DNA of 64,000 nucleotides, taken from Phaeosaccion multiseriatum. Its lineage: Eukaryota; Protista; Ochrophyta, other classes. Every line of letters begins with the position of its first letter. Within the stretch, counting starts at the first letter, position 1. The translations under genes and the position numbers were made by a program. Below, piece after piece: positions 11,264 through 63,301 of this stretch. Where the stretch lies: positions 3,286,001 to 3,350,000 of the forward strand of contig OZ218958.1 in NCBI GenBank assembly GCA_965112735.1. Reading direction: 5' to 3'. The notes under the pieces are model-generated. The model was not told the DNA's origin and did not search any database. It saw nothing but the letters and a program-made list of their open reading frames with translations.

Positions 11264-12667
11264 TTAAGAACACATCACCTGAAGCCCCTCGGGTCGATCT
11301 GCAGGCAGCGGGCATCCCCTCCCCACCGTAAGCTTCTTGAGCCCAGCCGGTAGGCTCTCCAGAGGGCAGGAGTATTGAGACCTCAGTGTAAGAGTCCGCA
11401 GAGAGGGAGGGAGGTCCAGGGGGAGGTTAAAGTCACGCCCCATGCCTACCTCCTCGACACCATTGGGAAGGACCACAGGCTGATTGAAGTAATATCCAAA
11501 AGTGACCTTCTTGATCGAGGAAGGGAGATCGATTGGCCTGTTGAACCTTGAGTACCCCTCAAACCTCAGCTCCTCCAGAGAGCTTGGTAGCACCAAATCA
11601 GCCTGATTGAGGTGTTGTCCAAAAGTGACCTTCTTCAGCGAGGAAGGGAGAACGATTGGCCTGTTGAAATGTGAGTACCCCTCAAACCTCAGCTCCTCCA
11701 GAGAGCTTGGTAGCACCAAATCAGCCTGATTGAAGTGTTGTCCAAAAGTGACCTTCTTCAGCGGGGAAGGGAGAACGATTGGCCTGTTGAACCTTGAGAA
11801 AGTTGGAAACTCCAGCTCCTCCAGAGAGCTTGGTAGCACCAAATCAGCCTGATCGAAGAGAACTCCAAAAGTGACCTTCTTCAGGGAGGAAGGAAGAGCG
11901 ATAGGCCTGTTGAAACCTGAGTCCTCTGAAAACCCCAGCTCCTCCATAGAGCTTGGTAGCACCAAATCAGCCTGATTGAAGTATTCTCCAAAAGTGACCT
12001 TCTTCAGCGAGGAAGGGAGAACGATTGGCCTGTTGAACCACGACAATGGTGAAAACTCCACCTCCTCCACGCCGCTCGGCACAACAACGTCGCAAGCATC
12101 GAAGAACTCCGAAAAAGTCACACGCTTGACCGACAGTGGCAACAGTGCCAACACTTTGAGAGCAAGGGCCGCATCAGTTGGAGTCAGCTCGTCAGCGCCT
12201 GGACGTTGGATGCCGAGGCGCACCGCCCTGACGCGAAAGGAACCCGCCATACCATGGTCCGGCTGCCTCGCCCTAACCCTCCCCGACCTTCGAAGCCCTT
12301 CCACGGCATGTCTTCCCCGCATGGAGGCGGGAGGAGGGGAGGAAGCCGCAGCAAGGCGTTGAGTCTCCTCGCGCTCCCGCTGTTGCTGCTGCTTCAGCAT
12401 GCTCAGCACCCGTGACTGGATAGCTTGTGGCATCTCGGCGTTGATCACCAAAGCGCGGGAAGTAAACTTGTCCACCTCCTTGCATACGCCCCACAGAGCC
12501 TTGTTCGAAACACGGCCGGCAACCATCCTCAATGCCGCCGGCCCGCTGCTGCTGAGACTGGTGCGCTCTGGCAAATCCCCATCCGCTCCACCGGTCTTTT
12601 GATGGCTTTCTTCCATCACGACGCCCCCCCCGTTCGTTTCACCCCCCTTCGACGTGCTGCCCTTCAT
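11264..12667 (-). CDS. FNIP-repeat (LRR-like) protein with a degenerate F-box-like N-terminal motif, copy A (4 core 41-aa units)
   Basis: Intronless 467-aa ORF with repeats FxQADLVLPSSLEELxFxxxSx-FNRPIxLPSSLKKVTFGxx, matching the FNQPI..LP.SL..L.FG FNIP pattern. Confidence 0.88.
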   Translation of the reverse strand: MKGSTSKGGETNGGGVVMEESHQKTGGADGDLPERTSLSSSGPAALRMVAGRVSNKALWGVCKEVDKFTSRALVINAEMPQAIQSRVLSMLKQQQQREREETQRLAAASSPPPASMRGRHAVEGLRRSGRVRARQPDHGMAGSFRVRAVRLGIQRPGADELTPTDAALALKVLALLPLSVKRVTFSEFFDACDVVVPSGVEEVEFSPLSWFNRPIVLPSSLKKVTFGEYFNQADLVLPSSMEELGFSEDSGFNRPIALPSSLKKVTFGVLFDQADLVLPSSLEELEFPTFSRFNRPIVLPSPLKKVTFGQHFNQADLVLPSSLEELRFEGYSHFNRPIVLPSSLKKVTFGQHLNQADLVLPSSLEELRFEGYSRFNRPIDLPSSIKKVTFGYYFNQPVVLPNGVEEVGMGRDFNLPLDLPPSLRTLTLRSQYSCPLESLPAGLKKLTVGRGCPLPADRPEGLQVMCS

Positions 12668-14427
12668 TGTACTCCCTCTCCTTCCCCCTTTCCAGCGTCA
12701 CTGCGATACTTCGCTGTGGTGGGGTGGTGCAGACCGACTGATCGGGAATCGGGGAGGACATTTTACATATTACACCCTTAAGAGTGCAGTGCAGTGCATC
12801 TATCGGGGAGGACATGACGATGAAAGGAATTGACTTGACGTGTTGGTGCTAGATTCGTCGAGGGCTCACAGCTCCGAGGGTTGGAAGGGGGGGGGGGGGG
12901 GGCAACAATCGGCCTCCCCTCTTCCTCTTCCTTTCGATTCCCACCTCTGCTTCTCTTACAGTTCCAACATGGAGGACATACATGCGAGTATCGCAGCAGT
13001 GAGTAGGAAGGAGGAGGCAGTGGAGCAGGCGTTGAGCGGGCAGGGCAGCTACTTGGGGCTGTGCTTGGGAGGAGCAGCACCAGCAGCGGATGGTGAGAGG
13101 GAGGGAGTGAGGAAGGAGCTGCTGATGCACCTCCAAGCTTTGAGGGAGGAGAAGGCGAAAGAGAAAGCTCGCCTGAGGGAAGAGAAGGCTCACGAGAGGG
13201 ACGAGAAGGTTCGCGAGAGGGAAATGGAGGAAAAGCGGTTCGAGGAGAAGACAAAAGAGAGGATCCTGGAGAGCGAGAAGGAGCTTATCCTCCTCCGCCT
13301 CGAAGTGCAACCACCAGCAGCCACCAGAGGCCGCAGCTTCCTCCATCAAGGTGCCGACATACAGGAGGGGATAGTAGAGAGAAGGCGGGGCACCAAGCGG
13401 CGACGTTCGACTTCAGGAAGGGAGGATGGAGATGGCGGAGATGGTGGACGTGCTACAATTCGTCGAGCTTCCCTTCCTGGTCCGGGCGCCTGTGCAAATG
13501 CCTTTGGCATGAGAGAGGTATATGGAAAGGTGATGGAGCTCGTGGGGAAAGGGGAATACGCTTTCGTCGCGACCGTGTGCAAGGAGTGGAGGGGGCACTA
13601 CATCGTTGCGCACCCAGCCAAGACAAGCCAAAGGAGTGTAGTTGCCTCCATCGATCGTGTGTACTGGGCCAGGAGGCACGGCTACGAGCTTACAGTCGAA
13701 TCGTTCAGGGCCGCTGCTCAGTATGGAGATGTGAGCATGTGCAAGGCCCTCCATCACATGGGCTGTGCCTGGAGCGAGGCTGTGTGCCGCTCTGCAGCTT
13801 TGAACGAGCGGCACAGCCTGTGTGTGCTCAAGTGGCTGCGCTCAGAGGACTCGGCTGACGCCAAGGAGGGGAAATGCCCGTGGAATGAGGAGGTCTGCGA
13901 TGCTGCTGCGCGGAGGGGGGACTTGAAACTGCTGGAGTGGCTTCTGTCGGATGCTGTGAGCGCCCCCTTTAATGAGGTGATGTGGCTCTGTGCTATTCGT
14001 TATGGGCGCATCTCTGCGCTGGCATGGCTGCTGAACAATCCCAAGGTCAGGGCTAAGCTGGACGGAGCGGAGGAGGGCAGTTGGTGGAGGAGTGGAGCTA
14101 GTTCTGCTGCTCATGGCAGTCAAAGTGCTTTGCGGTGGCTGCACGCCAATGCGAGTGGGCTTTGTGATTGGACCCCTGACGTATGCAGATATGCACTTGA
14201 AGGAGGCAAGAGCCTGGAAATGCTGCAGTGGCTCCGCTCAGAAGAGGTGGGCTGTCCGTGGGACGAGAGTGTCTGTCCAGAGGCCATCAGGAGAGCGGAG
14301 GAGGAAGCAGGTGGACAGTGGGACATCAGGGGAAGTGTCTTTGAGGAGATGAAGCAGTGGGTCCATGCCAATGGGCACCCCTGCGACTGCGAGGACTGAT
14401 GAGCCAGAAGCAGTGTATATGTATGGT
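11278..14427. mobile_element. FNIP/ankyrin two-gene cassette, copy A (minimal)
   Basis: High similarity to 39750-42700 and, inverted, to 59810-63280. Homology stops a few codons before the FNIP stop and about 30 bp after the ankyrin stop. No transposase, TIR or TSD was seen, so mobility is inferred from dispersed copies. Confidence 0.55.
12969..14399 (+). CDS. Coiled-coil + F-box-like + CPW-type ankyrin-repeat protein, copy A
   Basis: Intronless. ATG at 12969 (MEDIHASI) is conserved in all three copies. Contains YAFVATVCKEWR followed by repeats such as CPWNEEVCDAAARRGDLKLLEWL and LEMLQWLRSEEVGCPWDE. Confidence 0.85.
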   Translation: MEDIHASIAAVSRKEEAVEQALSGQGSYLGLCLGGAAPAADGEREGVRKELLMHLQALREEKAKEKARLREEKAHERDEKVREREMEEKRFEEKTKERILESEKELILLRLEVQPPAATRGRSFLHQGADIQEGIVERRRGTKRRRSTSGREDGDGGDGGRATIRRASLPGPGACANAFGMREVYGKVMELVGKGEYAFVATVCKEWRGHYIVAHPAKTSQRSVVASIDRVYWARRHGYELTVESFRAAAQYGDVSMCKALHHMGCAWSEAVCRSAALNERHSLCVLKWLRSEDSADAKEGKCPWNEEVCDAAARRGDLKLLEWLLSDAVSAPFNEVMWLCAIRYGRISALAWLLNNPKVRAKLDGAEEGSWWRSGASSAAHGSQSALRWLHANASGLCDWTPDVCRYALEGGKSLEMLQWLRSEEVGCPWDESVCPEAIRRAEEEAGGQWDIRGSVFEEMKQWVHANGHPCDCED

Positions 14428-15019
14428 CGGCCATGGTAACGAACACATGAGACGGGTGCCTCTCCTGTGAGTACCAGCTTGGCATACATTTATAAGTATT
14501 ATACATAAACATGGCCCCGCCCACGGACCCGGCTTCTGTAAGAGATCCGAGACCAACGACGGCTCCTAAAGCGTCGAAAAAGAGAGCAAATAAATCTAAA
14601 CTAACCCCTGCCAGCTGCTTCCTTGGCACTCGGCCCGCCACGTTTCGGACTACTGGATGCGAGGCAAGCGGCTCGCAGCCTTCTGCGACAGAGGACACGC
14701 TCTTGCCCTCTGTCCTTCCTTTCTGTTGCCTGTAGCCCCCCCCCCCCCAACCTTCAGACAGGGCCATTCTTCAACAGACTGCACGAGATCCCTGTACCGT
14801 CTCGCTCATAAACACTAGAGCTCTAAAGAGAAACTAGAGCTCTCCCTCTCTAGCGCTCTCTCCCTCCTGCTCCCTCTCTCTTCTCCCTGCTCTGGTTCAC
14901 CCGAAAGCCTTCCCTCCAGAAGCGTGAAAGGAAGGCGCCGGGCTCGGCAAGTCTCTGCTGCCAGACAGACAGACAGATAGACAGACAGACCTGGCGATCC
15001 ACGCGTGTCCTTCCCCTCC

Positions 15020-15185
15020 TCACCCCAGCGTCATGCCTGCCAGCAGAGCGGCAGAGCCGGGCCCGTAAGCTGAGCCTCCGGTGTTCGTCTCCTGAGAGCG
15101 CCGTCGGAGGGGGGAGAGCGACCGCACCCCGTCGGTAGCGCTACGAGTTATCTGAGGGGCGGGAGAAGAAGAAGAAGAAGAAGAA

Positions 15186-15217
<32 letters not shown>

Positions 15218-17219: not shown

Positions 17220-17525
17220 TGATGCCCAGGGTCAGTCTGTCCGTCCCACTGGAGTCTCTCTCACATTCTCGCTGAAGAAAGCGTCTGCTACTTCCGCACG
17301 CGGGGAGAGCGGCGAGAGGCCACCAGCCAGCCTCTCTTATCGTCCCACAATGCCAGTTTTTTTGTCTTTCCTTGTCTCTCTTTTGTCTGCTTCCGTCTCG
17401 CTCAGACTTCTGCTCATATGCCTCCATCCAGTACCTGGGGTCAGGGGTTTTGGGCACATGATCGATTTTTGTTCAAAAATCCTCGAGCCAATAAAGAGCT
17501 TAGGGACCTTGTGGTGCATTGAAGT

Positions 17526-20500
17526 ATGGCGCCTGCTGCTGCTGTGCTGGCCACACTCGCAGCGGCGGTGACGGTGCTCCCTGGTACCGAAGCTTTGCTT
17601 TGCCAGCCCGCTCCGAGATCGGCCGCAGCGCTGGGTGCGATCCAGGGCAGAGGCGGCAGCAGCGCCAGCAGGAGCCGCGGCAGTAGCCACCGGTGCAGCC
17701 TGGGTGGCAGTAGCAGCAGCAGTGCGGGCGAGTGGGCGGCCAATGTGAACAGAAGGAGCGGCGGTGGTGGTGGCAGCAGCAGGAACACCAGGAGAAAAGC
17801 GGCGCTCACGACGGGGAGGGGAGCCGCAGTGGCAGGCGGCACGGCAGCGTGGGGACTGTACGAGTCGCAGCTCGCGAGGAGGAGAACGATGGCAGCCTCC
17901 ACGGCGGCCTGCATCACCACCATGTGCATGTCGGGTAGCAGTGAGGGAGAGGACGGAGGGCCTAGGTGGGGGAAGAGGGCTCGAGTTATGCACGCGCTCT
18001 CCAGTGTGAGGTGAGTGAGAAGGAGGACGGGGCAGAATCGCGAGGATACGAGGATAAGAGAGCAGGCTTGCAAATTTTGTGGAATGAAGGCGTGTGCTTT
18101 TCCTGACCAGAAAACGCCCACGCTCGCCCACCCCTCCCTGCTGCTGGAAACCACCCCTGTCCTCACTCAATGACACCCCTCAGGAAAGCCGTCCAGCGCC
18201 GCGCCATTAAAGCGGCTCTACTGGCGGGCACCATTGGCTTCTCGCTACTAAACACCCGAGGCGGCGGGGTGGCCCATGCTGGAGCCCCTCTACCGGACGC
18301 CGACAGCCTCATGAAGAATCTTCCCTCTTCCCGCACTGTGGTCACGGGAGAGGAAATCTTGCGGCAGAGGCTGGCGGACGCGGAAGCGAGAGAGGCGCAG
18401 GAGGAGAGTGGGGCGGCGGTGGAGACGGCCTCTGCGAGCGGCAAGAGGGGGGGCAGAAGGGGCAAGGGCAAGGGCAGGGCGGCGGTGGAGGTGCCTGATG
18501 TGAACATGGAGGGCATGTCGCCGGAGCTGCGGGCAATGCTGCAGGAGCAGCTGGACGTGCTGGAGATGTATAGAGACAGAGCAGAGGGAGGCGTCATGCC
18601 CGGAGAAGAAGAAGGAGGAGCAAGGGGGGCAGAATCGATGGGCGCCGAGGAAGAGACGATGGACTTTGAGCAATTCGCGGCACAGTGGGAGGGAGAGGAA
18701 GATTGGGAGGGCGAAGAAGGAGAAGAAGAAGGAGGAGGAGGAGGAGGAGGGGGGCTGCTGGGGCGGTTGGGTGTATCGGAGGACGGCGTGAGGGAGATGG
18801 GAGAGAGGGCCTTGGACCTGGCCATGACCACGGGGCAGGGGGTGCGGCAAGTTGCCAGCAAGCCCTTGGTGCAGGGAGGAGTAGCGGTGGCGTGCGCGGG
18901 CGGGGGCGTGGCGTACTGGCTGTCGGGCAGGGAGGAGAGGCAAAAGATTGCCTACGAGACCAAGAGGCAGAGGGAGAAGGCCGCCCGAAGGGCAGCCAAG
19001 CCTGAGCGGGACCTGACCTTGAGCAAGCCACCCACCGACGACTTTGACTTCGGCGGCCTGCTGGGCGACGATGAGGAGGTCTCCTTCAAGCCTCCTCCGC
19101 CCCGCCCGGCCCCGGCACCAAAGGCAGCACCACCAGCGGCTGCCAAGAAGCCAGCACCAGCACCAGCACCCGCTGCCAAGAAAGCAGCAAAAGGAGCAGC
19201 AACAGCAACAGCAGCTGTAGCGGCAGTTAAGGCCCCCAAGGCCGATTCTGTGGACACCGCTGCTGCCACCGCCACCAAGAAGGCCCCCAAGGCAGCCCCC
19301 AAGGCGGCCCCTCCTGCTCCTGCTCCTGCTCCTGCCGCCCCCGCCCCCGTGATTGTGGCCAAGGCGGGCAACAATGAGGGAGGCGACAAGGCGGGGGGCA
19401 AGAAGAAGTTCAACCTCTTCCGCAAGGACAAGGGCCCTCAGCGCGCCACGGACGTGGCGGCTGCCATCGCCAGCACGGCGTCGGACTCCGAGTCGGTCTT
19501 TGTGGAGGGCGTGGCCCGAGCCCTTGCACGCTTTGCGCCCCCTGGGGCCGTGGACCAGCGTTTCGCTCCGACGGCGACGGAGATGAAGGAGGTGGAGGAG
19601 GAGGGGGCAGGCTTCGACGCCTTGGCGGGCCTGGGCAGGGCTGCGGACATGTCGGTGGTGCACATGGCCAATCAGGTAAGCAGAGGGGCAGTGCGCTGGG
19701 GGAGGAGGGGAGGACAGAGCAGGGGGGGCTCAGCTGTTTCAGGGGTTGTATGCTTGGAAGAAGGATGAAGGAAGGAAGGAAGGGAGGGAGGGGGATGGGG
19801 AGGGAGGGAAGGAAGGGAGGGAGGGAGGAAGGAAGGAAGGAAGGGAGGGAGGGAGGAAGGAAGGGAGGAAGGAAGGAAGACGGACAGGACGGGAGGAAGG
19901 AAGGGAGGGAGAAAGACAGGAAGGGAGGAAGGGAGGGCGGAAGAGAGGAAGTGAGGAAGGGAGGAAGGCAGGCAACAAAGGCGTTGCAGGCAGGGCAGAT
20001 CCCTCCCCCTCCTCCCTGACCCATGCAAGAAGTGACGTCCCCATCCTCCCATCTACCTCCACCATTCCTGCCCTACTCTCTCTTCTCTACATTCCTCTCC
20101 TCCCCTCTCCTCGCCTCTCCTCTCTTTTGCTCCCCTCTAACCTCCTCTCCTTTGCCCTCCTCCCATCCCCTCTCCTCTCCTCGTCTCCTCTCATCCCCTC
20201 TCCGCTCCTCTCCTCTCCTCCCCTCTACTCTACCCTCCTCTCCTCGCGTTTCCTACCGTCTCCCCCCCTCCCCTCCCCTCCCCTCTCCTTTCCTCTCCCC
20301 TCTGATCCCTTCCCCTCTCCTCTCCTCTCCTCCCCTCCCATCCCTTCCCCTCTCCTCTCTTCTCCTCTCCACTTTTCTCCTCCCTCACATCCTCTCCTCC
20401 CCTCCCCTCCCCTCCTCCCGCCTCTCCTCCCCTCCCCTCCCCTCCCCTCCCCTCCCCTCCCCTCCCCTCCCCTCTCCTTTCCTCTCCCCTCCCCTCCCTT

Positions 20501-23085: not shown

Positions 23086-23125
<40 letters not shown>

Positions 23126-24585: not shown

Positions 24586-25306
24586 TCGGCCCCTGACATG
24601 CTTCTGAGGCGACCCTGCTTCCTGCTTCTGGGCTGGCCTCTCTCAGAAGCATGTCAGGGGCGGACCTGTAATCAGATAATCTTGTCCAGGGTCGACTCCC
24701 TCCCTCCCTCCCTCCCTCCCTCCCTCCCTCCCTCCCTCCCTCCCTCCCTCCCTCCCTCCCTCCCTCCCTCCCTCCCTCCCTCCCTCCCTCCCTCCCTCCC
24801 TCCCTCCCTCCCTCCCTCCCTCCCTCCCTCCCTCCCTCCCTCCCTCCCTCCCTCCCTCCCTCCCTCCCTCCCTCCCTCCCTCCCTCCCTCCCTCCCTCCC
24901 TCCCTCCCTCCCTCCCTCCCTCCCTCCCTCCCTCCCTCCCTCCCTCCCTCCCTCCCTCCCTCCCTCCCTCCCTCCCTCCCTCCCTCCCTCCCTCCCTCCC
25001 TCCCTCCCTCCCTCCCTCCCTCCCTCCCTCCCTCCCTCCCTCCCTCCCTCCCTCCCTCCCTCCCTCCCTCCCTCCCTCCCTCCCTCCCTCCCTCCCTCCC
25101 TCCCTCCCTCCCTCCCTCCCTCCCTCCCTCCCTCCCTCCCTCCCTCCCTCCCTCCCTCCCTCCCTCCCTCCCTCCCTCCCTCCCTCCCTCCCTCCACTCC
25201 CTCCCTCCCTCCCTCCCTCCCTCCTTGCTTCCTGTTTCTGGCCGGCGCCAGAGGGCCTGCTTCCTGCTTCTGGGCTGGCCTCTCTCAGAAGCATGTCAGG
25301 GGCCGA
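24586..25306. mobile_element. MITE-like element with 23-bp TIRs enclosing about 525 bp of (CCCT)n
   Basis: tcggcccctgacatgcttctgag (24586-24608) is the perfect reverse complement of 25284-25306. Flanked on both sides by gtgcgt (24580-24585, 25307-25312). An internal third TIR copy lies at 24642-24661. Confidence 0.6.
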
Positions 25307-25685: not shown

Positions 25686-25756
25686 TGAGCCTGCCGAGAA
25701 TCGAACTCGGATCAAACAGTTGGGAACCGTTTATTCTACCCTTGAACCACAAGCCC
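25686..25756 (-). tRNA. tRNA-Gly (CCC)
   Basis: GGGCTTG TG GTTC AAGGGTA GAAT A AACGG TTCCCAA CTGTT TGAT CCGAG TTCGATT CTCGG CAGGCTC A folds into a full cloverleaf with a 4-nt variable loop. A TTTT Pol III terminator lies about 10 nt downstream. Confidence 0.85.
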
Positions 25757-31542: not shown

Positions 31543-31596
31543 TGTACGCATCGTCGCCGGCCACCACGCGGGAACCTCTTGGCGTCCTTCCCTCGG

Positions 31597-31632
<36 letters not shown>

Positions 31633-33770: not shown

Positions 33771-34290
33771 GTTGTCGTGGGATTGGTTCTTGTTTCCGGT
33801 CTCATGGTCGTTCTCGCGGAACACGCGGGTGTGTGGAAAGTTGATTCGTAAGTCAATGGCCCAGGCCCAGGCAGATACGGTGAGAACGGGTGGCGTGGCT
33901 CTCACTATCCTATGTGCGTAGGTGGTCGTTTAGGACTAGCATGAGATAAGTTAATAGAGGCAAGGCTGGCTTTGGGGTTGCTGTTACCTTGTCCGTGTGT
34001 CTAGTTCCATCCTATCTGTAGGCGACTTCCTATCCACTCATCGATTACCTGCCTTTTCCCATCCACTGCCTTCCCTCTCCTTCCTTCCTTCCTTCCTTCC
34101 CTCTCCTTCCTTCCTTCCTTCCTTCCCTCCTTCCCTCTCCTTCCTTCCTTCCTTCCTTCCTTCCTTCCTTCCTTCCTTCCTTCCTTTCTTCCTTCCTTCC
34201 TTCCTTCCCTCCTTCCCTCTCCTTCCTCCCTCCCTCCCTCCCTCCCTCCCTCCCCTCCTTCCTCTGCGTGACTGACTGACTGGCAGGAGC

Positions 34291-34431: not shown

Positions 34432-34462
<31 letters not shown>

Positions 34463-38655: not shown

Positions 38656-39735
38656 TAAGTCAGTAAGTCAGTAAGCGAATGAGAGTGACGGGAGTGACGG
38701 TGAGGCTGAGGGGTGGGGCTTGTGTGGTTGTGTGTGTTGAGTTTGAGTGTTGAGCCTGCTGTACCCGTCTCGTCTCGCAACCAACACCGGGGCAGGGCAG
38801 GCAGGGCTCAGCGGCTCTACGCCCACCCCGAAGGAAGCCCCAAAGCTCCAAGGACAAGGGGACCTCTGCTCATTCTGAGACACCATCAGCACTCACGGAC
38901 ACTGTGTCCTGATACTGCTCACTGTGTCCTGACACTGCTTCCTGACACCTTCCCCTCTTGAAACTCACTGGAACTGCCACAGGCTCATCGGTATGGGGGC
39001 TTCCCTTGTGGGGGAGGGCAGCGCGGTGTATGAGGCAGCAAGCCCCACTGCTTCTCGCAACTCAAGCTGGCCCTACAGCGAAGCAGACTGACGCCTGACT
39101 TGAGGCCGTCTGCGCTTTGTAGTACCTGGTGTCCACCAGCTGGCCGTACGGCGAGGGCGGCTGAGAGAGGACTGAGTGAGGACTGACTAAAGAGGGAGAC
39201 AAAGAGGGAGGCTCTCTTGCTTGCACTCTGATATCTGTACCTGGTGTCAGCCCCAACCCCCTCGTGGCGCTGCGACTCCCACTCCTTGGATCCTACACCA
39301 ACCAACACACTTTTGAGTCTTTCCGTCCTGGCCGGCCCATAGCTAGCTAGGCCTACCCATCGACGCAGATGGCTCATTCCAGTGGCCGCCCCAAAGCTTC
39401 CTCAAACGGGAGAGCGGGAGGTGTCGGGCAGCGGCAGACGGTGGCAGCCTTCGTGGACTCTCTCTTGGCCTGGGTGAGTCGAGGCCTGGGCCTGCAGGCA
39501 GACACTCTGAGAGCAGGCAGGCAGTGATGATAACAAAAGACAGTTCAAGAGGGCACTTTGCTGTCGCACCGCAGCGGAAGGGAGGGGTGGGCGAGCGGAG
39601 GGTGGCAGGTCAGGATAGGCCTCACTCGAGCACTGTAGACGCTCCCACGTGGTACCATTCTAGTAGGGGCAGTTGAGCAGGACGATCAAAACAAATTCAC
39701 CAAAGAAATGTCTTAATTTTTTTTTTTAAAGTATT

Positions 39736-41034
39736 TCAGGGTAGGGAATTATCACGGTGTACCTGAAGCCCCTCGGGGAGGTCTGCAGGCAGTGGGTACC
39801 CCCACCCCACCGTAAGCTTCTTCAGCCCAGCAGGTAGGCTCGGAAGAGGGCAGGAGTATTCAGGACTCAGTGTAAGAGCCTGCAAAGAGGGAGGGAGGTC
39901 CAGGGGGAGGTTAAAGTCAGCCCCCATTTCCACCTCCTCTACACCATTGGGAAGGACCACATGCTGATTGAATCCATCTCCAAAAGTGACCTTCTTCAGC
40001 GAGGAAGGGAGAGCGATTGGCCTGTTGAACTCTGAGTGCCATGAAAACTCCAGCTCCTCCAGAGAGCTTGGTAGCACCAAATCAGCCTGATCGAAGTGTT
40101 CTCCAAAAGTGACCTTCTTCAGCGAGGAAGGGAGAACGATTGGCCTATTGAACTCTGAGTAATGCGAAAACCCTAGCTCCTCCAGAGTGCTTGGTAGCAC
40201 CAAATCAGCCTGATCGAAGAGAATTCCAAAAGTGACCTTCTTCAGCGAGGAAGGGGGATCGATTGGCCTGTTGAACAATGAGTTCCATGCAAACTCCAAC
40301 TCCTCCAGAGAGCTTGGTAGCACCAAATCAGCCTGATCGAAGCGCCGGCCAAAAGTGACCTTCTTCAGTGAGGAAGGAAGACCGATACGCCTGTTGAACC
40401 ACGACAATGGTGGAAACGCCACCTCCTCCACGCCACTCGGCACAACAACGTCGCAAGCATCGAAGAACTGGGAGAAATGCACAAGCTTGACCGAGATTGG
40501 CAACAGTGCCAACACTTTGAGAGCAAGAGCCGCATCAGTTGGAGTCAGGCTATCAGCGCCTAGACGTTGGATGCCGAGGCGCACCGCCCTGACGCGAAAG
40601 GAGCCCGCCATACCATGGTCCGGCTGCCTCGCCCTAACCCTCCCCGACCTTCGAAGCCCTTCCACGGCATGTCTTCCCCTCATGGAGGCGGAAGGAGGGG
40701 AGGAAGCCGCATCAAGGCGTTGAGTCTCCTCGCGCTCCCGCTGCTGCTGCTGCTTCAGCATGCTCAGCACCCGCGACTGGATAGCTTGTGGCATGTCGGC
40801 GTTGATCACCAAAGCGCGGGAAGTAAACTTGTCCACCTCCTTGCATATGCCCCACAGAGCCTTGTTTGAAACACCAACACGACCAGCAACCACCCTCAAT
40901 GCCGCCGGCCCGCTGCTGCTGAGACTGGGGCGCTCTGGCAAATTCCCCCCCGCTCCATCGGTCTTTTGATGACTTTCTTCCACCACGCCGTCCCCCCCCT
41001 TCGTTTCACCTCCCTTCGACGTGCTGCCCTTCAT
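39736..41034 (-). CDS. FNIP-repeat protein, copy B (3 core units)
   Basis: Intact intronless 432-aa paralog of 11264-12667. Confidence 0.88.
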   Translation of the reverse strand: MKGSTSKGGETKGGDGVVEESHQKTDGAGGNLPERPSLSSSGPAALRVVAGRVGVSNKALWGICKEVDKFTSRALVINADMPQAIQSRVLSMLKQQQQREREETQRLDAASSPPSASMRGRHAVEGLRRSGRVRARQPDHGMAGSFRVRAVRLGIQRLGADSLTPTDAALALKVLALLPISVKLVHFSQFFDACDVVVPSGVEEVAFPPLSWFNRRIGLPSSLKKVTFGRRFDQADLVLPSSLEELEFAWNSLFNRPIDPPSSLKKVTFGILFDQADLVLPSTLEELGFSHYSEFNRPIVLPSSLKKVTFGEHFDQADLVLPSSLEELEFSWHSEFNRPIALPSSLKKVTFGDGFNQHVVLPNGVEEVEMGADFNLPLDLPPSLQALTLSPEYSCPLPSLPAGLKKLTVGWGYPLPADLPEGLQVHRDNSLP

Positions 41035-41257
41035 TGTACTCCCTCTCCTTCCCCCTTTCCAGCGTCACTGCGATACTTCACTGTGGTGGGGTGGTGTAGA
41101 CCGACTGATCGGGAATTGGGGGGGATAAAATAGGGGGGAAGAACGTCAAAGGAGCTGACTTGACGTGTTGGTGCTAGATTCGTGGAGGGCTCACAGCTCC
41201 GAGGGCTGGAAGGAAGGGGGGGGGGAAACAATTGACCCTTTTTCTTACGATTCCAAC

Positions 41258-42675
41258 ATGGAGGACATACATGCAAGTATCGCAGCAGTGAGCAGGAAGG
41301 AGGAGGCAGTGGAGCAGGCGTTGAGCGGGCAGGGCAGCTACTTGGGGCTGTGCTTGGGAGGAGCAGCACCAGCAGCGGATGGTGAGAGGGAGGGAGGGAG
41401 GAAGGAGCTGCTGATGCACCTCCAAGCTTTGAGGGAGGAGAAGGCGAAAGAGAAAGCTCACCTGAGGGAAGAGAAGGCTCATGACAGGAACGAGAAGGTT
41501 CGCGAGAGGGAAATGGAGGAAAAGCAGTTCGAGGAGAAGACAAAAGAGAGGATCCTGGAGAGAGAGAAGGAGCTTATCCTCCTCCGTCTCGAAGTGCAAC
41601 CACCAGCAGCCACCAGAGGCCGCAGCTTCCTCCATCAAGGCGCCGACATACAGGAGGGGATAGTAGAGAGAAGGGGGGGCACCAAGCGGCGACGTTCGAC
41701 TTCAGGAAGGGAGGATGGAGATGCCGGAGATGGTGGACGTGCTACAATTCGTCGAGCTTCCCTTCCTGGTCCGGGCGCCTGTGCAAATGCCTTTGGCATG
41801 AGAGAGGTATATGGAAAGGTGATGGAGCTCGTGGGGAAAGGGGGATACGCTTTCGTCGCGACGATGTGCAAGGAGTGGAGGGGGCACTACATCGTTGCGC
41901 ACCCAGCCAAGACAAGCCAAAGGAGTGTAGTTGCCTCCATCGATCGTGTGTACTGGGCCAGGAGGCAGTCGAAACGTTCAGGGCCGCTGCTCAGTATGGA
42001 GATGTGAGCATGTGCAAGGCCCTCCATCACATGGGCTGTCCCTGGGATGAGGATGTGTGCGACGGGGCATCGAGAAACGAGCGGTACAGCCTGCGTGTGC
42101 TCAAGTGGCTGCGCTCAGAGGATTTGGCTGACTCCAAGGAGGGGAAATGCCCGTGGAATGAGGAGGTCTGCCGTGCTGCTGCGCGGAGGGGGGACTTGCA
42201 GCTGCTGGAGTGGCTTCTGTCGGATGACGTGAACGCACCCTTTGATGAGTATGTGTGGCTCTGTGCTATTCATTATGGGCACATCTCTGTGCTGGCATGG
42301 CTGCTGAACAATCCCAAGGTCAGGGCTGAGCTGGACGGAGTGGGGGAGGGGAGTATGTGGAGGAGGGGACCTCATTTGGCTGCTTATTGCAGTCAACCGA
42401 ACACTTTGCGGTGGCTGCACGCCAATGCGCATGGGCTTTGTGATTGGACCCCTGACGTATGCAGATATGCAGTTAAAGACGGCGAGAGCCTGGAAATGCT
42501 GCAGTGGCTCCGCTCAGAAGGGGTGGGCTGTCCGTGGGACGAGAGTGTCTGTCCAGAGACCATCAGGAGAGCGGAGGAGGAAGCAGGTGGACAGTGGGAC
42601 ATCAGGGGAAGTGTCTTTGAGGAGATGAAGCAGTGGGTGCATGCCAATGGGCACCCCTGCGACTGCGAGGACTGA
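41258..42675 (+). pseudogene. Ankyrin-repeat partner, copy B, frameshifted
   Basis: A 16-bp deletion (cggctacgagcttaca in copy A, ca microhomology) near 41968 splits the ORF into 41165-42007 and 41866-42675. Confidence 0.88.
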
Positions 42676-43510
42676 GGAGCCAGAAGCAGTGTACGTGTAT
42701 GGCCTCTCATGGTCGGAGAGCGAGGTGGAGGGGCGCAGCGGCGGACGATCAATGCGGGGCTGTTGGTGCTGTGTTTCCATGTCCGTACACAGCGCCAAAT
42801 CGACTTCATTGTGGGGGAGAGGCGTGCATGGAGCTCCTGCAGCGGAAAGCTCGGGAGGGCACCACTTATTGTACGGGAGCGGCTGGGACACCTCACAGAG
42901 AGCATGGACAGGCCCTTTCACGCCCCAAGGGCGGCGGAGCGGAACCGCCCTCGACTGTTGGACGTGGTGCGGTCATCAGACCAGCGCTTCCTCCCCGCCT
43001 TGTACCTCGGCTGCTTGCTTCCAATGGAGGGGCGTGCGAAGTAGTACGGAGGCCATTGTGTGGGGTCGTCTTGTTCCCCTTAGGCAAGGCGGTGTGCAGA
43101 ATACATTTGTGCATATCGGCGTTGCTGGAGTGGTCCCACCCATCCAGTGGCCGCCCCAAGGCTTCCTCAGTTGGGAGAGCGGGAGGTGTCGGGCAGCGGC
43201 AGACGGTGGCAGCCTTCGTGGACTCTCTCTTGGCCTGGGTGAGTCGAGGCTTGGGCCTGCAGGAGACACTCTGAGAGCAGGCAGGCAGTGATGATAACAA
43301 AGACAGTTCAAGAGGGCACTTTGCTGTCGCACCGCAGCGGAAGGGAGGGGTGGTGGTGGGGGGGGGGGTGGCAGGGTAGGGCTCACTCATGGTTGGAGCA
43401 CTGTAGACGCTCCCACGTGGTACCATTCTAGTAGATTGCTAGGCTGCTGGGGCAGTTGCTTGAGCAGTACGATCAAAACAAATTCACCAAAGAAATGTCT
43501 TGGAAGTATT

Positions 43511-43649
43511 TCAGGGTAGGGAATTATCACGGTGTACCTGAAGCCCCTCGGGGAGGTCTGCAGGCAGCGGGTACCCCATCCCCACCGTAAGCTTCTTCAG
43601 TCCAGCAGGTAGGCTCGGAAGAGGGCAGGAGCAGTGAGAACTCAGTGTA
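43511..43649 (-). pseudogene. 3' remnant of a further FNIP gene
   Basis: Encodes TLSSHCSCPLPSLPAGLKKLTVGMGYPLPADLPEGLQVHRDNSLP*; homology stops abruptly at about 43649. Confidence 0.85.
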
Positions 43650-43891: not shown

Positions 43892-56482
<12,591 letters not shown>

Positions 56483-57452: not shown

Positions 57453-59003
57453 ATGGAGGCGGAACATGGCGAGAGCGCGTGGACGACGGGGAGCGTGGGA
57501 TCGAGCACGGCGGGCTCCGCTCTGCTGTCCTTGGGAGACCCTGCTGCGGCTGCTGCGGCTGCTGTCTCGGAGGGTAGTAGAGTCGCAGTAGCCGTCTTGG
57601 CCATAATGGCGGGAGAAATGTCGAGCAAGGACCTATGGGGCATTCACGGAGACGTTGACGAGGTTACCTCTCGCACTTTGGTCTTCAGGGCCGCTATGCC
57701 GCGTGATACTCAGCAGCGTCTCCTTGACATGCTGAAGCGGCAGCAGCAGCAGCAGCAGAGACCGGATCATGATGCCGGGCTGCCCGGGCAGGAGAGGTCA
57801 TTTCATGTCAAAGCTGTGCGCTTTGACGACTATACCCTGGCTGTGAGTGTGTCGGGAGTGTTGGCCGTGCTACCCCCTTCAGTCAAGCGGGTGGAGCTGC
57901 CTAACGGCTTTAATGAGGCGGACTTGGTGCTACCAAGCTCTCTGGAGGAGCTGAGGTTTTCAGAGGACTCAGAGTTCAACAGGCCAATCGTTCTCCCTTC
58001 CTCGATGAAGAAGGTCACTTTTGGAGAACGCTTCGATCAGGCTGGTTTGGTACTACCAAGCTCTCTGGAGGAGTTGGAGTTTGCACGGGTCTCAAGGTTC
58101 AACAGGCCAATCGCTCTCCCTTCCTCGCTGAAGAAGGTCACTTTTGGAGAACACTTCGATCAGGCTGATTTGGTGCTACCAAGCTCTCTGGAGGAGTTGG
58201 AATTTGCGTGGAACTCATGGTTCAGCAGACCAATCGTTCTCCCCTCCTCCCTGAAGAAGGTTACTTTTGGAAGAGCCTTCGATCAGGCTGATTTGGTGCT
58301 ACCAAGGTCTCTGGAGGAGTTGGAATTTTCAGAGTACTCAGAGTTCAACAGGCCTATCGCTCTTCCTTCCTCCCTGAAGAAGGTCACTTTTGGAGAATAC
58401 TTTCACGCAGATTTGGTGTTACCAAGCTCTCTGGAAGAGCTGAGGTTTTCATACGGTTCATGGTTCAACAGGCCAATCGTTCTCCCTTCCTCGCTGAAGA
58501 AGGTCGCTTTTGGACATGACTTCGATCAGGCTAATTTGGTGTTACCAAGCTCTCTGGAGGAGCTCAAGTTTTCAGAGGACTCAGAGTTCAACATGCCAAT
58601 CGATCTCCCTTCCTCGCTGAAGAAGGTCACTTTAGGAGAATGTTTCGATCAGGCTGATTTGGTGCTACCAAGCTCTCTGGAGGAGCTGGAGTTTTCATGG
58701 AACTCAGTGCTCAACAGGCCAATCGATCTCCCCCCCTCGCTGAAGAAGGTCACTTTTGGAGATAGATTCAATCAGCCTGTGGTCCTTCCCAATGGTGTCG
58801 AGGAGGTGGTCATGGGGGCTGACTTTAACCTCCCCCTGGACCTCCCTCCCTCTCTTCGGGCTCTTGCGCTGAGCTCTGAATACTCCTGCCCTCTTTCGAG
58901 CCTACCTGCTGGGCTGAAGAAGCTTACGGTGGGGGTGGGGTACCCGCTGCCTGCACATCTACCCGAGGGGCTTCAGGTACACCGTGTTCCTTCCCTACCC
59001 TGA
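57453..59003 (+). CDS. FNIP-repeat protein, copy D (7 core units, divergent N-terminus)
   Basis: Intronless 516-aa ORF. Repeats and C-cap are nearly identical in framework to copies A-C, while the N-terminus is only distantly similar (MSSKDLWGIHGDVDEVTSRTLV vs VSNKALWGVCKEVDKFTSRALV). Confidence 0.88.
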   Translation: MEAEHGESAWTTGSVGSSTAGSALLSLGDPAAAAAAAVSEGSRVAVAVLAIMAGEMSSKDLWGIHGDVDEVTSRTLVFRAAMPRDTQQRLLDMLKRQQQQQQRPDHDAGLPGQERSFHVKAVRFDDYTLAVSVSGVLAVLPPSVKRVELPNGFNEADLVLPSSLEELRFSEDSEFNRPIVLPSSMKKVTFGERFDQAGLVLPSSLEELEFARVSRFNRPIALPSSLKKVTFGEHFDQADLVLPSSLEELEFAWNSWFSRPIVLPSSLKKVTFGRAFDQADLVLPRSLEELEFSEYSEFNRPIALPSSLKKVTFGEYFHADLVLPSSLEELRFSYGSWFNRPIVLPSSLKKVAFGHDFDQANLVLPSSLEELKFSEDSEFNMPIDLPSSLKKVTLGECFDQADLVLPSSLEELEFSWNSVLNRPIDLPPSLKKVTFGDRFNQPVVLPNGVEEVVMGADFNLPLDLPPSLRALALSSEYSCPLSSLPAGLKKLTVGVGYPLPAHLPEGLQVHRVPSLP

Positions 59004-59834
59004 AAACTTCTAAGACATTTCTGCGATTTTTCTTTTACTAGCTAGCTACTTTAGCTATTTACCATTTTTTTTTATACCATTTTTTTTTTCTTTACCACGT
59101 GGGAGCGTCTACAGTGCTCCAACCATGAGTGAGCCCTACCCTGCCGCCCCCCCCCCCCACCACCACCCCTCCCTTCCGCTGCGGTGCGACAGCAAAGTGC
59201 CCTCTTGAACTGTCTTTGTTATCATCACTGCCTGCCTGCTCTCAGAGTGTCTGCCTGCAGGCCCAAGCCTCGACTCACCCAGGCCAAGAGAGAGTCCACG
59301 AAGGCTGCCACCGTCTGCCGCTGCCCGACACCTCCCGCTCTCCCAACTGAGGAAGCCTTGGGGCGGCCACTGGATGGGTGGGACCACTCCAGCAACGCCG
59401 ACATGCACAAATGTATTCTGCACACCGCCTTGCCTAAGGGGAACAAGACGACCCCACACAATGGCCTCCGTACTACTTCGCACGCCCCTCCATTGGAAGC
59501 AAGCAGCCGAGGTACAAGGCGGGGAGGAAGCGCTGGTCTGATGACCGCACCACGTCCAACTGTCGAGGGCGGTTCCGCTCCGCCGCGTGAAAGGGCCTGT
59601 CCATGCTCTCTGTGAGGTGTCCCAGCCGCTCCCGTACACTGAGTGGGGCCCTCCCGAGCTTTCCGCTGCAGGAGCTCCATGCACGCCTCTCCCCCACAAT
59701 GAAGTCGATTTGGCGCTGTGTACGGACATGAAAACACAGCACCAACTGCTCCACATTGATCGTCCGCCGCTGAGTCCCTCCACCTCGCTCTCCGAGCATG
59801 AGAGGCCATACACACATACACTGCTTCTGGCTCA

Positions 59835-61268
59835 TCAGTCCTCGCAGTCGCAGGGGTGCCCATTGGCATGGACCCACTGCTTCATCTCCTCAAAGACACT
59901 TCCCCTGATGTCCCACTGTCCACCTGCTTCCTCCTCCGCTCTCCTGATGGCCTCTGGACAGACACTCTCGTCCCACGGACAGCCCACCTCTTCTGCGCGG
60001 AGCCACTGCAGCATTTCCAGGCTCTTGCTTTCTTTAACTGCATCTCTGCATACGTCAGGGGTCCAATCACAAAGCCCATGCGCATTGGCGTGCAGCCACC
60101 GCAAAGTGTTCGGTTGACTGCAATAAGCAGCAATCCGAGGTCCCCTCCTCCACCAACTGCCCTCCTCCGCTCCGTCCAGCTTAGCCCTGACCTTGGGAAT
60201 GTTCAGCAGCCATGCCAGCGCAGAGATGTGCTCATAGTCAATAGCACAGAGCCACACATACTCATCAAAGGGGGCGTTCACGTCATCCGACAGAAGCCAC
60301 TCCAGCAGTTTCAAGTCCCCCCTCCGCGCAGCAGCATCGCAGACCTCCTCATTCCACGGGCATTTCCCCTCCTTGGCGTCAGCCGAGTCCTCTGAGCGCA
60401 GCCACTTGAGCACACGCAGGCTGTACCGCTCGTTCAAAGCTGCAGAGCGGCACACCGCCTCGCTCCAGGCACAGCCCATGTGATGGAGGGCCTTGCACAT
60501 GCTCACATCTCCATACTGAGCAGCGGCAATGAACGTTTCGACTGTCAGCTCGTAGCCGTGCCTCCTGGCCCAGTACACACGATCGATGGAGGCAACTACA
60601 CTCCTTTGGCTTGTCTTGGCTGCGTGTTCCACGATGTAGTGCCCCCTCCACTCCTTGCACACCGTCGCCACGAAAGCATACTCTCCCTTTCCCACGAGAT
60701 CCATCACCTTTCCATATACCTCTCTCATGCCAAAGGCATTTGCACAGGCGCCCGGACCAGGAAGGGAAGCTCGGCGAAAGGCAGCACGTCCACCATCTCC
60801 GCCATCTCCATCCTCCCTTCCTGAAGTCGAACGTCGCCGCTTGGTGCCCCCCCTTCTCTCTACTATCCCCTCCTGTATGTCGGCGCCTTGATGGAGGAAG
60901 CTGCGGCCTCTGGTGGCTGCTGGTGGTTGCACTTCGAGGCGGAGGAGGATAAGCTCCTTCTCTCTCTCCAGGATCCTCTCTTTTGTCTTCTCCTCGAACC
61001 GCTTTTCCTCCATTTCCCTCTCGCGAACCTTCTCGTCCCTCTCGTGAGCCTTCTCTTCCCTCAGGTGAGCTTTCTCTTTCGCCTTCTCCTCCCTCAAAGC
61101 TTGGAGGTGCATCAGCAGCTCCTTCCTCACTCCCTCCCTCTCACCATCCGCTGCTGGTGCTGCTCCTCCCAAGCACAGCCCCAAGTAGCTGCCCTGCCCG
61201 CTCAACGCCTGCTCCACTGCCTCCTCCTTCCTGCTCACTGCTGCGATACTTGCATGTATGTCCTCCAT
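59835..61268 (-). CDS. Coiled-coil + F-box-like + CPW-type ankyrin-repeat protein, copy C
   Basis: Intact 477-aa paralog starting MEDIHASI and ending GHPCDCED*. Confidence 0.85.
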   Translation of the reverse strand: MEDIHASIAAVSRKEEAVEQALSGQGSYLGLCLGGAAPAADGEREGVRKELLMHLQALREEKAKEKAHLREEKAHERDEKVREREMEEKRFEEKTKERILEREKELILLRLEVQPPAATRGRSFLHQGADIQEGIVERRGGTKRRRSTSGREDGDGGDGGRAAFRRASLPGPGACANAFGMREVYGKVMDLVGKGEYAFVATVCKEWRGHYIVEHAAKTSQRSVVASIDRVYWARRHGYELTVETFIAAAQYGDVSMCKALHHMGCAWSEAVCRSAALNERYSLRVLKWLRSEDSADAKEGKCPWNEEVCDAAARRGDLKLLEWLLSDDVNAPFDEYVWLCAIDYEHISALAWLLNIPKVRAKLDGAEEGSWWRRGPRIAAYCSQPNTLRWLHANAHGLCDWTPDVCRDAVKESKSLEMLQWLRAEEVGCPWDESVCPEAIRRAEEEAGGQWDIRGSVFEEMKQWVHANGHPCDCED

Positions 61269-61516
61269 GTTGGAATCGTAAGAGAAGCAGAGGTGGGAAT
61301 CGAAAGGAAGAGGAAGAGGCCGATTATTGCCCCCCCCCCTCTTCTCGCCCTCGGAGCTGTGAGCCCTCGACGATTCCAGCACCAACACGTCAAGTCAAAA
61401 TTCCTTTATCTCCATCCTACAACTGTAATGGTGTAATATATATTTATCCTGCCCCCCCCGATTCCCGATCAGTGGTCTACACCACGCTGGAAAGGGGGAA
61501 GGAGAGAGAGAGTACA

Positions 61517-63301
61517 ATGAAGGGCACCACGTCGAAGGGAGGTGAAACGAAGGGGGGGGGCGGCGTGATGGAAGAAAGTCATCAAAAGACCGGTGGAGCG
61601 GATGGGGATTTGCCAGAGCGCACCAGTCTCAGCAGCAGCGGGCCGGCGGCATTGAGGATGGTTGCCGGCCGTGTTTCGAACAAGGCTCTGTGGGGCGTAT
61701 GCAAGGAGGTGGACAAGGTAACTTCCCGCGCTTTGGTGATCAACGCCGAGATGCCACAAGCTATCCAGTCACGGGTGCTGAGCATGCTGAAGCAGCAGCA
61801 ACAGCGGGAGCGCGAGGAGACTCAACGCCTTGCTGCGGCTTCCTCCCCTCCTCCCGCCTCCATGAGGGGAAGACATGCCGTGGAAGGGCTTCGAAGGTCG
61901 GGGAGGATTAGGGCGAGGCAGCCGGACCATGGTATGGCGGGCTCCTTTCGCGTCAGGGCGGTGTGCCTCGGCATCCATTTTCCAGGCGCTGACGAGCTGA
62001 CTGCAACTGATGCGGCTCTTGCTCTCAAAGTGTTGGCACTGTTGCCACTGTCGGTCAAGCGTGTGGGTTTTTCGGAGTTCTTCGATGCTTGCGACGCTGT
62101 TGTGCGGAGCGGCGTGGAGGAGGTGGAGTTTCCACCATTGTCGTGGTTCAACAGGCGTATTGGTCTTCCTTCCTCACTGAAGAAGGTCACTTTTGGCCAA
62201 CGCTTCAATCAGGCTGATTTGGTGCTACCAAGCTCTCTGGAGGAGGTGGAGTTTTCATCGAACTCATTGTTCAGCAAGCCAATCGTTCTCCCTTCCTCGC
62301 TGAAGAAGGTCACTTTTGGAAATTCCTTCGATCAGGCTGATTTGGTGCTACCAAGCTCTCTGGAGGAGTTGAAATTTTCATGGAACTCATCGTTCAACGG
62401 GCCAATCGTTCTCCCTTCCTCCCTGAAGAAGGTCACCTTTGGATTCTGCTTCGATCGGGCTGATTTGGTGTTACCAAGCTCTCTGGAGGAGCTGGATTTA
62501 TGGAACTCAAGGCTCAACGGGCCAATCGATCTCCCTTCCTCGCTGAAGAAGGTCACTTTTGGAAGAGCTCCCTTCGATCAGGCTGATTTGGTGCTACCAA
62601 GCTCTTTGGAGGAGCTCAGGTTTGAACAGGACTCATGGTTCAACAGGCCAATCATTCTCCCTTCTTCACTGAAGAAGCTCAGTTTTGGAAAATTCTTCGA
62701 TCAGGCTGATTTGGTGCTACCAAGCTCTCTGGAGGAGCTGGAGTTTTCATTAATGTCACAGTTCAACAGCCCAATCGTTCTCCCTTCCTCGCTGAAGAAG
62801 GTCACTTTTGGAGTTTTCTTCGATCAGGCTGATTTGGTGCTACCAAGCTCTTTGGAGGAGCTGAAGTTTTCAGACCGCTCAAGGTTTAACAGGCCAATCG
62901 ATCTCCCTTCCTCGCTGAAGAAGGTCACTTTTGGATTACACTTCGATCAGGCTGATTTGGTGCTACCAAGCTCTCTGGAGGAGCTGAAGTTTTCAGGCCT
63001 CTCAGTGTTCAACAGGCCAATCGTTCTCCCTTCCTCGCTGAAGAAGGTCACTTTTGGAGGTGGATTCAATCAGCCTGTGGTCCTTCCCAATGGTGTAGAG
63101 GAGGTGGAAATGGGGGCTGACTTTAACCTCCCCCTGGACCTCCCTCCCTCTGTGCAGGCTCTTACACTGAGTCCTGAATCCTCCTGCCCTCTTCCGAGCC
63201 TACCTGCTGGGCTGAAGAAGCTTACGGTGGGGTGGGGGTACCCACTGCCTGCAGACCTCCCCGAGGGGCTTCAGGTACACCGTGATAATTCCCTACCCTA
63301 A
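61517..63301 (+). CDS. FNIP-repeat protein, copy C (7 core units)
   Basis: Start MKGTTSKGG at 61517 is homologous to the starts of copies A and B; 594 aa, intronless. Confidence 0.88.
   Translation: MKGTTSKGGETKGGGGVMEESHQKTGGADGDLPERTSLSSSGPAALRMVAGRVSNKALWGVCKEVDKVTSRALVINAEMPQAIQSRVLSMLKQQQQREREETQRLAAASSPPPASMRGRHAVEGLRRSGRIRARQPDHGMAGSFRVRAVCLGIHFPGADELTATDAALALKVLALLPLSVKRVGFSEFFDACDAVVRSGVEEVEFPPLSWFNRRIGLPSSLKKVTFGQRFNQADLVLPSSLEEVEFSSNSLFSKPIVLPSSLKKVTFGNSFDQADLVLPSSLEELKFSWNSSFNGPIVLPSSLKKVTFGFCFDRADLVLPSSLEELDLWNSRLNGPIDLPSSLKKVTFGRAPFDQADLVLPSSLEELRFEQDSWFNRPIILPSSLKKLSFGKFFDQADLVLPSSLEELEFSLMSQFNSPIVLPSSLKKVTFGVFFDQADLVLPSSLEELKFSDRSRFNRPIDLPSSLKKVTFGLHFDQADLVLPSSLEELKFSGLSVFNRPIVLPSSLKKVTFGGGFNQPVVLPNGVEEVEMGADFNLPLDLPPSVQALTLSPESSCPLPSLPAGLKKLTVGWGYPLPADLPEGLQVHRDNSLP

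Follow-up and report, generated by a model that had tools for sequence, protein, structure and literature searches.

Three divergent FNIP–ankyrin gene pairs copied from one segment in the genome of Phaeosaccion multiseriatum

The DNA described here is a stretch of 64,000 nucleotides from the ochrophyte Phaeosaccion multiseriatum (assembly GCA_965112735.1, contig OZ218958.1, positions 3,286,001 to 3,350,000), hereafter called the window. It contains three pairs of genes arranged head to head, each made of a gene for a protein with FNIP repeats and a gene for a protein with ankyrin repeats (Ank). The pairs lie within 52 kb, at about 11.3–14.4, 39.7–42.7 and 59.8–63.3 kb, as judged from the listing of open reading frames (ORFs) and the placement of the ATG codons, and the third is inverted. 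The start codons of the two partners, on opposite strands, are 301, 223 and 248 bp apart in pairs 1, 2 and 3, respectively. An earlier note on this DNA had described the same divergent pair three times in 52 kb, in both orientations and with ATGs some 220–300 bp apart, and this description is borne out. It had also presented the pair as intronless among intron-bearing host genes. Every intact FNIP and Ank copy is indeed one uninterrupted ORF, and the neighbours are multi-exon host genes, but the note had missed that Ank2 is broken by a frameshift; the two reading-frame pieces of this gene were analysed separately. Two further features had been missed, an unpaired fourth FNIP gene (FNIP-B) and a 3' fragment of a FNIP gene.

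All three pairs derive, as paralogues, from a single segment of DNA. Self-comparison with BLASTN shows copy 1 (11277–14437) to be 90.8% identical to copy 3 and 89.3% identical to copy 2 (E = 0), while copy 2 (39045–43649) and copy 3 (64000–58869) share 90–95% identity, spacer and 3' flanks included. Once the internal repeats are left out, the copies are 93–95% identical. As paralogous copies of one segment with 89–95% identity, the pairs recur far more often than chance would allow. The copies form a nested series of truncations, of which copy 3 is the fullest, containing FNIP-A, Ank and the complete FNIP-B. Copy 2 reaches some 140 bp into the 3' end of FNIP-B before it stops, and copy 1 has one boundary within the final codons of FNIP-A and the other about 40 bp beyond the Ank stop codon. 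Part of the 3' flank of FNIP-A2 (39378–39735) is also found, by the same self-comparison, in the flank of FNIP-B and in the fragment behind Ank2. The closest pair of copies switches along the alignment, which points to gene conversion. The three pairs go back to a single ancestral juxtaposition that was spread by duplication at the DNA level, and are not three independent pairings. The earlier note had taken the three occurrences as a sign of functional coupling; one duplicated segment is close to the outcome that it had itself named as speaking against that view.

Because the boundary of copy 1 at 11264–11290 falls inside the last codons of FNIP-A1, the gene has acquired a new stop codon and its product a shorter C-terminal tail that differs from those of the other copies. 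Copy 1 also lacks the ~360-bp 3' flank that the other FNIP genes have in common.

The FNIP proteins are recognized unambiguously by Pfam, where all four genes match PF05725 with 114–220 bits against a cut-off of 21 (E 2e-33 to 2e-66). The best relative of known structure is Crov588 of Cafeteria roenbergensis virus (CroV; PDB code 6nyr), with a phmmer E-value of 1.2e-70. The AlphaFold2 model (predicted local distance difference test score, pLDDT, of 83) superposes best on 6nyr (E 2.5e-14) and on Crov539 (PDB code 7zal). The FNIP proteins of the window belong to the FGxxFN subclass of leucine-rich repeats (LRRs), whose families have been described as large, variable repertoires of binders, some with a fused F-box (PMC9525666). 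The FGxxFN family is multicopy and variable in CroV, Megavirus, dictyostelids and virophages (PMC9525666, PMC10945749), and F-box–FGxxFN proteins of Megavirus baoshan are cited in PMC9525666.

The four genes of the window share with this family the Pfam and sequence match, the superposition on Crov588, the FGxxFN motif, and their multicopy and variable nature. They differ in their repeat, a 123-bp, 41-residue double unit with FGxxFN in every second half only, and in belonging to a cellular genome that is GC-rich. The arrays contain about 5.5 (A1), 4.5 (A2), 8.5 (A3) and 7.5 (B) of these units, and the 123-bp DNA repeat was counted in 3.4–7.4 copies. The four proteins gave no sign of a fused domain such as an F-box or a kinase. 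The N-terminal 69 residues are modelled by AlphaFold2 as disordered and are followed by a long helix; a Pfam search of the N-terminal region with E up to 10 returned no F-box or other domain, and none of 85 FNIP relatives contains an F-box. The N-terminal region of FNIP-B is only 36–38% identical to those of the A copies. The top FNIP match, on a contig of Effrenium voratum (L129, gene 8001–35129), is a gene model 27 kb long in which FNIP repeats are combined with biotin-carboxylase and carbamoyl-phosphate-synthase domains; it may be a merged model and not a real fusion.

Variation among the FNIP repeats is confined to a few positions. In 17 in-register units of 41 columns, 34 columns are near-invariant: the commonest residue accounts for no less than 65% in all of these columns and for no less than 76% in all but one. 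Columns 8, 9, 25, 28, 29, 31 and 37 are hypervariable, with four to nine different residues each. The rate of nonsynonymous substitution (dN) in the hypervariable columns is 0.88, compared with a synonymous rate (dS) of 0.13 in the framework, a contrast that is inflated by the choice of the seven columns after the data had been seen; within the framework dN/dS is 0.38. Without selection for diversity, a roughly sevenfold excess of this kind over neutrality would be difficult to account for. Judging from the register of the LRR, the hypervariable positions would follow each β-strand, on the edge that usually contacts ligands.

The Ank proteins consist of two halves. Residues 1 to ~200 form a coiled-coil rich in Glu and Lys, with no family match in Pfam, and the C-terminal half contains six CPW-type ankyrin-like repeats. 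The Pfam model Ank_4, with a cut-off of 22.7 bits, gives 31.6–33.9 bits for copy 1 and 19.8 bits for copy 3. In an exhaustive search, 6341 representative proteins proved to be related to Ank at E < 1e-3, and of 100 sampled relatives 99 are clear, strong ankyrin proteins. The model of the protein (pLDDT 84, predicted template-modelling score, pTM, 0.78) is a helix-turn-helix ankyrin solenoid, which resembles the ankyrin domains of Espin, EHMT1, FEM1 and RNase L with modest template-modelling (TM) scores of 0.4–0.46. Structural matches in viruses are ankyrin proteins of Pandoravirus, Cedratvirus and Pithovirus, with E-values of 1e-9 to 1e-10 (best 7.5e-10), and the named cellular relatives come from Chrysoparadoxa australica and Balamuthia mandrillaris. 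The identification of both families in the earlier note, and the giant-virus and protist affinities it had assigned to them, are upheld.

The nearest relative of Ank in sequence is a protein of 1444 residues encoded on a metagenomic contig that also encodes VLTF3, a poxvirus-type late transcription factor, and that therefore probably belongs to a giant virus. Also encoded on this giant-virus-like contig (L003; 20194–21960, minus strand) are an IS605 OrfB/TnpB-like protein and a number of RING-finger proteins, of which one is joined to ankyrin repeats.

The CPW-type ankyrins of Pandoravirus, Cedratvirus, Pithovirus, Chrysoparadoxa and Balamuthia, some of which have an N-terminal F-box, share with the Ank proteins of the window the ankyrin solenoid fold and a short N-terminal helical region, and in two relatives a C-terminal motif. 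The window proteins differ by the additional coiled-coil half of ~200 residues, and they are no more than 41% identical to any relative. A Pfam F-box precedes the repeats in 5 of 100 Ank relatives. In the Ank proteins a three-helix region, modelled with moderate confidence (pLDDT 63–71), stands where the F-box of these relatives would be, but Pfam detects no F-box in the N-terminal region, even at E up to 10.

The two halves of Ank evolve differently. Between Ank1 and Ank3 the N-terminal half has a dN/dS of 0.16, a sign of purifying selection, whereas the ankyrin half shows values of 1.0–1.4 in every comparison, about the neutral rate, with the changes clustered in the central repeats. The difference between the halves is significant (Fisher P = 5e-4). 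Positive selection on the ankyrin domain was considered and dropped, as the value of 1.4 does not significantly exceed 1 (P = 0.22), and only the heterogeneity along the gene is claimed. The recognition role proposed in the earlier note receives some support from the hypervariable FNIP positions and the fast-evolving ankyrin domain; nothing observed establishes a two-part immune system, and no signalling or enzyme domain was found in either protein.

Table 1. Coordinates of the cassette genes, their spacers and flanks, and of the main microsatellites in the window
Feature	Position	Strand	Description
FNIP-A1	11264–12667	-	intronless, 467 aa, ~5.5 units of 41 aa; PF05725 E 3.6e-44
Pair 1 divergent intergenic region	12668–12968	.	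301 bp; aligns with the other two copies, with indels
Ank1	12969–14399	+	intronless, 476 aa; E/K-rich coiled-coil half, short three-helix region, six CPW-type ankyrin-like repeats
FNIP-A2 3' flank	39045–39735	-	95% common with the copy 3 flank 63302–64000
FNIP-A2	39736–41034	-	intact ORF, 432 aa, ~4.5 repeat units; PF05725 E 2.4e-33
Pair 2 divergent intergenic region	41035–41257	.	223 bp
Ank2	41258–42675	+	broken by a single frameshift, otherwise unbroken
Truncated FNIP remnant	43143–43649	-	3' flank and roughly the last 140 bp of coding sequence; direct repeat of 39378–39874 (87%); matches FNIP-B 3' end
FNIP-B	57453–59003	+	fourth FNIP gene, unpaired; 516 aa, ~7.5 units; PF05725 E 1.9e-66; tail-to-tail with Ank3
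Ank3	59835–61268	-	intact, 477 aa, 92% identical to Ank1
Pair 3 divergent intergenic region	61269–61516	.	248 bp
FNIP-A3	61517–63301	+	intact, 594 aa, ~8.5 repeat units; PF05725 E 1.1e-57
FNIP-A3 3' flank	63302–64000	+	matches 39045–39735; likeness continues to the window end and may extend further
Microsatellite TGTC x54	7670–7887
Microsatellite GGAA x55	19756–19972
Microsatellite CTCC x132	24696–25224
Microsatellite TCCT x45	34078–34263
Microsatellite GCAG x144	47978–48555

The surroundings of the pairs are those of an intron-rich cellular genome with a G+C content of ~60% and abundant tetranucleotide microsatellites. Host genes in the window encode eIF2B-epsilon, an RCC1-like and an Hsp70-like protein, and proteins with a Yae1 domain and an ephrin-receptor-like domain. 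The gene for eIF2B-epsilon (4396–8263, plus strand) was mapped exon by exon; its homologue is collinear with at least five separate exons, interrupted by introns of roughly 0.3–1.5 kb, so the contrast between intronless pairs and intron-rich neighbours is real. The nearest database proteins to its LbH exon are 38–39% identical, and the host lineage therefore seems poorly represented in the public protein collection. The 129 long open frames outside the cassette genes yield only five kinds of host domain, which fits short exons.

The only Rfam/ARAGORN match in the window is a gene for tRNA-Gly (anticodon CCC; 25686–25756, minus strand), which adjoins the 132-copy CTCC microsatellite. Long dinucleotide runs of AG, TG, GT and CT are also present. 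Both strands carry long ORFs that are spurious products of the microsatellites, which may mark introns and intergenic DNA. An uninterrupted ORF of 1106 codons (53162–56482, plus strand) encodes a low-complexity product rich in Ser, Gly and Ala, hydrophobic near the N-terminus and around residue 370; the product has no match in Pfam and may be a lineage-specific membrane or surface protein. The idea that the window itself is part of a giant-virus genome, suggested by its Pandoravirus-like G+C content and the ankyrin matches, is excluded by the multi-exon eIF2B-epsilon gene, RCC1, the tRNA gene, the long microsatellites and the low coding density.

Pairing as a general property of the two families is not supported by the loci surveyed outside this genome. 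The ankyrin loci included 80 metagenomic loci, which together span 648 kb and of which 39 are 6 kb or longer, collected with a narrow alignment as the query; no FNIP gene was found in their flanks, and none beside a related ankyrin gene in all 85 ankyrin loci. Of the FNIP loci, 38 from giant viruses were collected with a degenerate DNA pattern. One FNIP locus of 43 has a CPW-ankyrin gene beside a FNIP gene, and the two are co-directional; it is among the 38 giant-virus loci, and the ankyrin gene lies within a FNIP array. Otherwise a FNIP gene at these 43 loci has further FNIP genes for neighbours, not ankyrin genes. In nine additional contexts of the best matches, the two families did not occur together. 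In the window itself, no ankyrin gene is paired with the older paralogue FNIP-B, and in pair 2 an intact FNIP gene stands next to a broken Ank. The sole locus with both families (L112, 363–3776, plus strand) belongs to a giant-virus metagenome bin and has its CPW-ankyrin gene between FNIP genes on the same strand.

The locus is probably best described as a young, fast-evolving, locally amplified cassette of two recognition-type genes. The ancestral segment would have contained FNIP-A and Ank, diverging from a promoter region of 220–300 bp, followed by FNIP-B directed towards Ank. Segmental duplication of DNA would have carried this segment to two further sites within 52 kb, once in inverted orientation, with copy 3 retaining everything, copy 2 stopping inside FNIP-B and copy 1 being left with the spacer and the coding regions on either side of it. 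Sequence would later have passed between the copies by gene conversion, the FNIP arrays would have been lengthened or shortened through unequal recombination of the 123-bp unit, and one Ank copy would by now have become a pseudogene. The products would be two protein-binding solenoids without an enzymatic or signalling domain, an FGxxFN-type LRR and a coiled-coil joined to ankyrin repeats, each of which may act as a fast-diversifying binder or adaptor. The intergenic region of pair 1 is presumed to be a bidirectional promoter, and on geometry alone the two genes are probably co-transcribed from their common spacer; their adjacency need not mean joint function. Birth-and-death families engaged in conflict with viruses or other parasites typically behave in this way, and the cassette may take part in a conflict of this kind.

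Several observations weigh against this description. Unique multi-exon host genes separate the scattered copies, and simple tandem duplication does not account for the spacing. At both ends, copy 1 stops no more than about 40 bp from a stop codon, and this tidy trimming hints at a more specific copying process. Together, dispersal and trimming leave a small probability for such a process or for a true functional unit. All four FNIP frames and two of three Ank frames are open, and the N-terminal half of Ank is constrained, so that the cassette is not junk and its genes could depend on each other. Lastly, the G+C content at third codon positions (GC3) is 0.62–0.66 in the cassette genes and 0.72–0.78 in the exons of neighbouring host genes, which could reflect either a foreign origin or a weak codon bias caused by low expression.

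It is possible, if rather doubtful, that both genes came from a nucleocytovirus, as the remnant of an integration or by a smaller transfer, and were then amplified; this concerns the origin of the cassette and is compatible with its local amplification. Besides the GC3 values, it would account for the lack of introns in an intron-rich genome, for the VLTF3-bearing contig of the best Ank relative and the viral structural matches of Ank, for the CroV proteins as best solved FNIP relatives, and for one strong FNIP match on a compact virus-like contig. However, the 64 kb contain no viral hallmark gene (capsid, polymerase B, packaging ATPase, VLTF3 etc.), and multi-exon host genes separate the cassettes. 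No close viral relative was found, and no match from searches for close relatives exceeded about 40% identity. Both families are abundant in cellular protists too, including Chrysoparadoxa, Balamuthia, brown algae, dictyostelids and dinoflagellates, so that genes may have passed in either direction. The lack of introns, the GC3 and the viral best matches make the viral origin suggested in the earlier note plausible without demonstrating it.

A true two-component recognition module is unlikely. Here the FNIP-LRR and ankyrin proteins would be co-expressed from the bidirectional spacer and act together, for example as a heterodimeric binder or as a sensor with its adaptor, and the genes would be kept and duplicated together in immunity or genetic conflict. 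The head-to-head geometry and the short spacer are retained in all three copies, copy 1 consists of exactly the two coding regions and the spacer, and hypervariable FNIP positions and a fast-evolving ankyrin domain occur beside the constrained N-terminal half of Ank. On the other side, all three pairs stem from one juxtaposition, the FNIP mate of the broken Ank is intact and FNIP-B is partnerless. The pairing was found at none of the ankyrin loci and, in co-directional form, at a single FNIP locus; neither protein has a signalling or effector domain in Pfam, and their N-terminal regions are unrelated (hhalign probability 0.15%). The fuller version, in which the FNIP-LRR and the coiled-coil ankyrin protein make up a co-regulated, co-duplicating protist recognition cassette that directs two variable surfaces jointly against viruses or selfish elements, following the logic of paired receptors with giant-virus-like parts, is improbable.

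Plants possess head-to-head pairs of sensor and helper nucleotide-binding leucine-rich-repeat receptors (NLRs), such as RGA4/RGA5 and RRS1/RPS4, to which the pair had been likened. The likeness covers the divergent orientation, the short common spacer, fast-evolving positions in repeat-type recognition domains and local duplication. Unlike these receptors, the window proteins contain no NB-ARC/NACHT, TIR, coiled-coil signalling or integrated decoy domain, Pfam finding FNIP and ankyrin repeats only; the partners come from different families, and their pairing is not conserved beyond the locus. As Pfam detects neither an NB-ARC, TIR, kinase or nuclease domain nor any other with a signalling or effector role, the sensor/helper analogy comes down to orientation.

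A transposable element that moves the pair as its cargo is very improbable. Three dispersed copies in both orientations between unrelated genes, and a direct repeat of ~500 bp around pair 2 (39378–39874 and 43143–43649), might suggest one, but this repeat, the only one to flank a copy, is the 3' end of the neighbouring FNIP gene and not a long terminal repeat. A search for terminal inverted repeats found none, and the end points vary from copy to copy. No transposase, integrase, reverse-transcriptase or viral hallmark domain was found in the 129 other long open frames of the window, and the transposon reading was rejected on the lack of terminal repeats and of enzyme domains. Of the earlier idea that the pair spreads as a unit, the copying of both genes as one unit stands, and mobility, for which neither machinery nor terminal repeats were found, does not. 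An assembly artefact, in which one locus rich in repeats and microsatellites was mis-assembled into several, is scarcely credible, as the copies differ by 5–11% and also in repeat number, end points and integrity, and each lies within unique sequence.

The locally amplified cassette has a close parallel in the repeat-protein families of giant viruses and amoebae, where FNIP and ankyrin genes undergo birth and death and multigene families of repeat proteins (ankyrin, FNIP, MORN, F-box) are enlarged by local duplication (PMC5753266, PMC9525666). The two families are the same, and duplication, change of repeat number and pseudogenisation are common to both; here, in contrast, a mixed pair is the duplicated unit, and it is located in a cellular chromosome.

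Substrate receptors of Skp1–cullin–F-box (SCF) ubiquitin ligases with LRR or ankyrin repeats (PMC9485057) resemble the window proteins in the short N-terminal helical region that precedes their repeat domain and in being lineage-specific and fast-evolving, and Skp1 interactors of Dictyostelium include FNIP-type LRR proteins (PMC9485057). The window proteins, however, do not reach the threshold for an F-box, which is infrequent among the Ank relatives and absent from the FNIP relatives sampled. An F-box-like N-terminal module common to FNIP and Ank was considered and, given the Pfam result, the disordered FNIP N-terminus and the hhalign comparison, rejected for FNIP; Ank may still have one. Ank, but not FNIP, may reasonably be guessed to serve as a substrate receptor of a ubiquitin ligase.

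Little is known of protist defences against giant viruses, and few gene families of these viruses and their hosts are as large, or as little understood, as those of the FNIP-type LRR and ankyrin proteins. Should the two proteins indeed act together, they would represent a new kind of paired recognition cassette; the present evidence indicates a lineage-specific expansion of gene families and not a new system. The locus offers a clean, small example of such genes diversifying in a cellular genome, displaying a co-duplicated two-gene unit, change in repeat number, gene conversion and hypervariability limited to a few positions of a solenoid.

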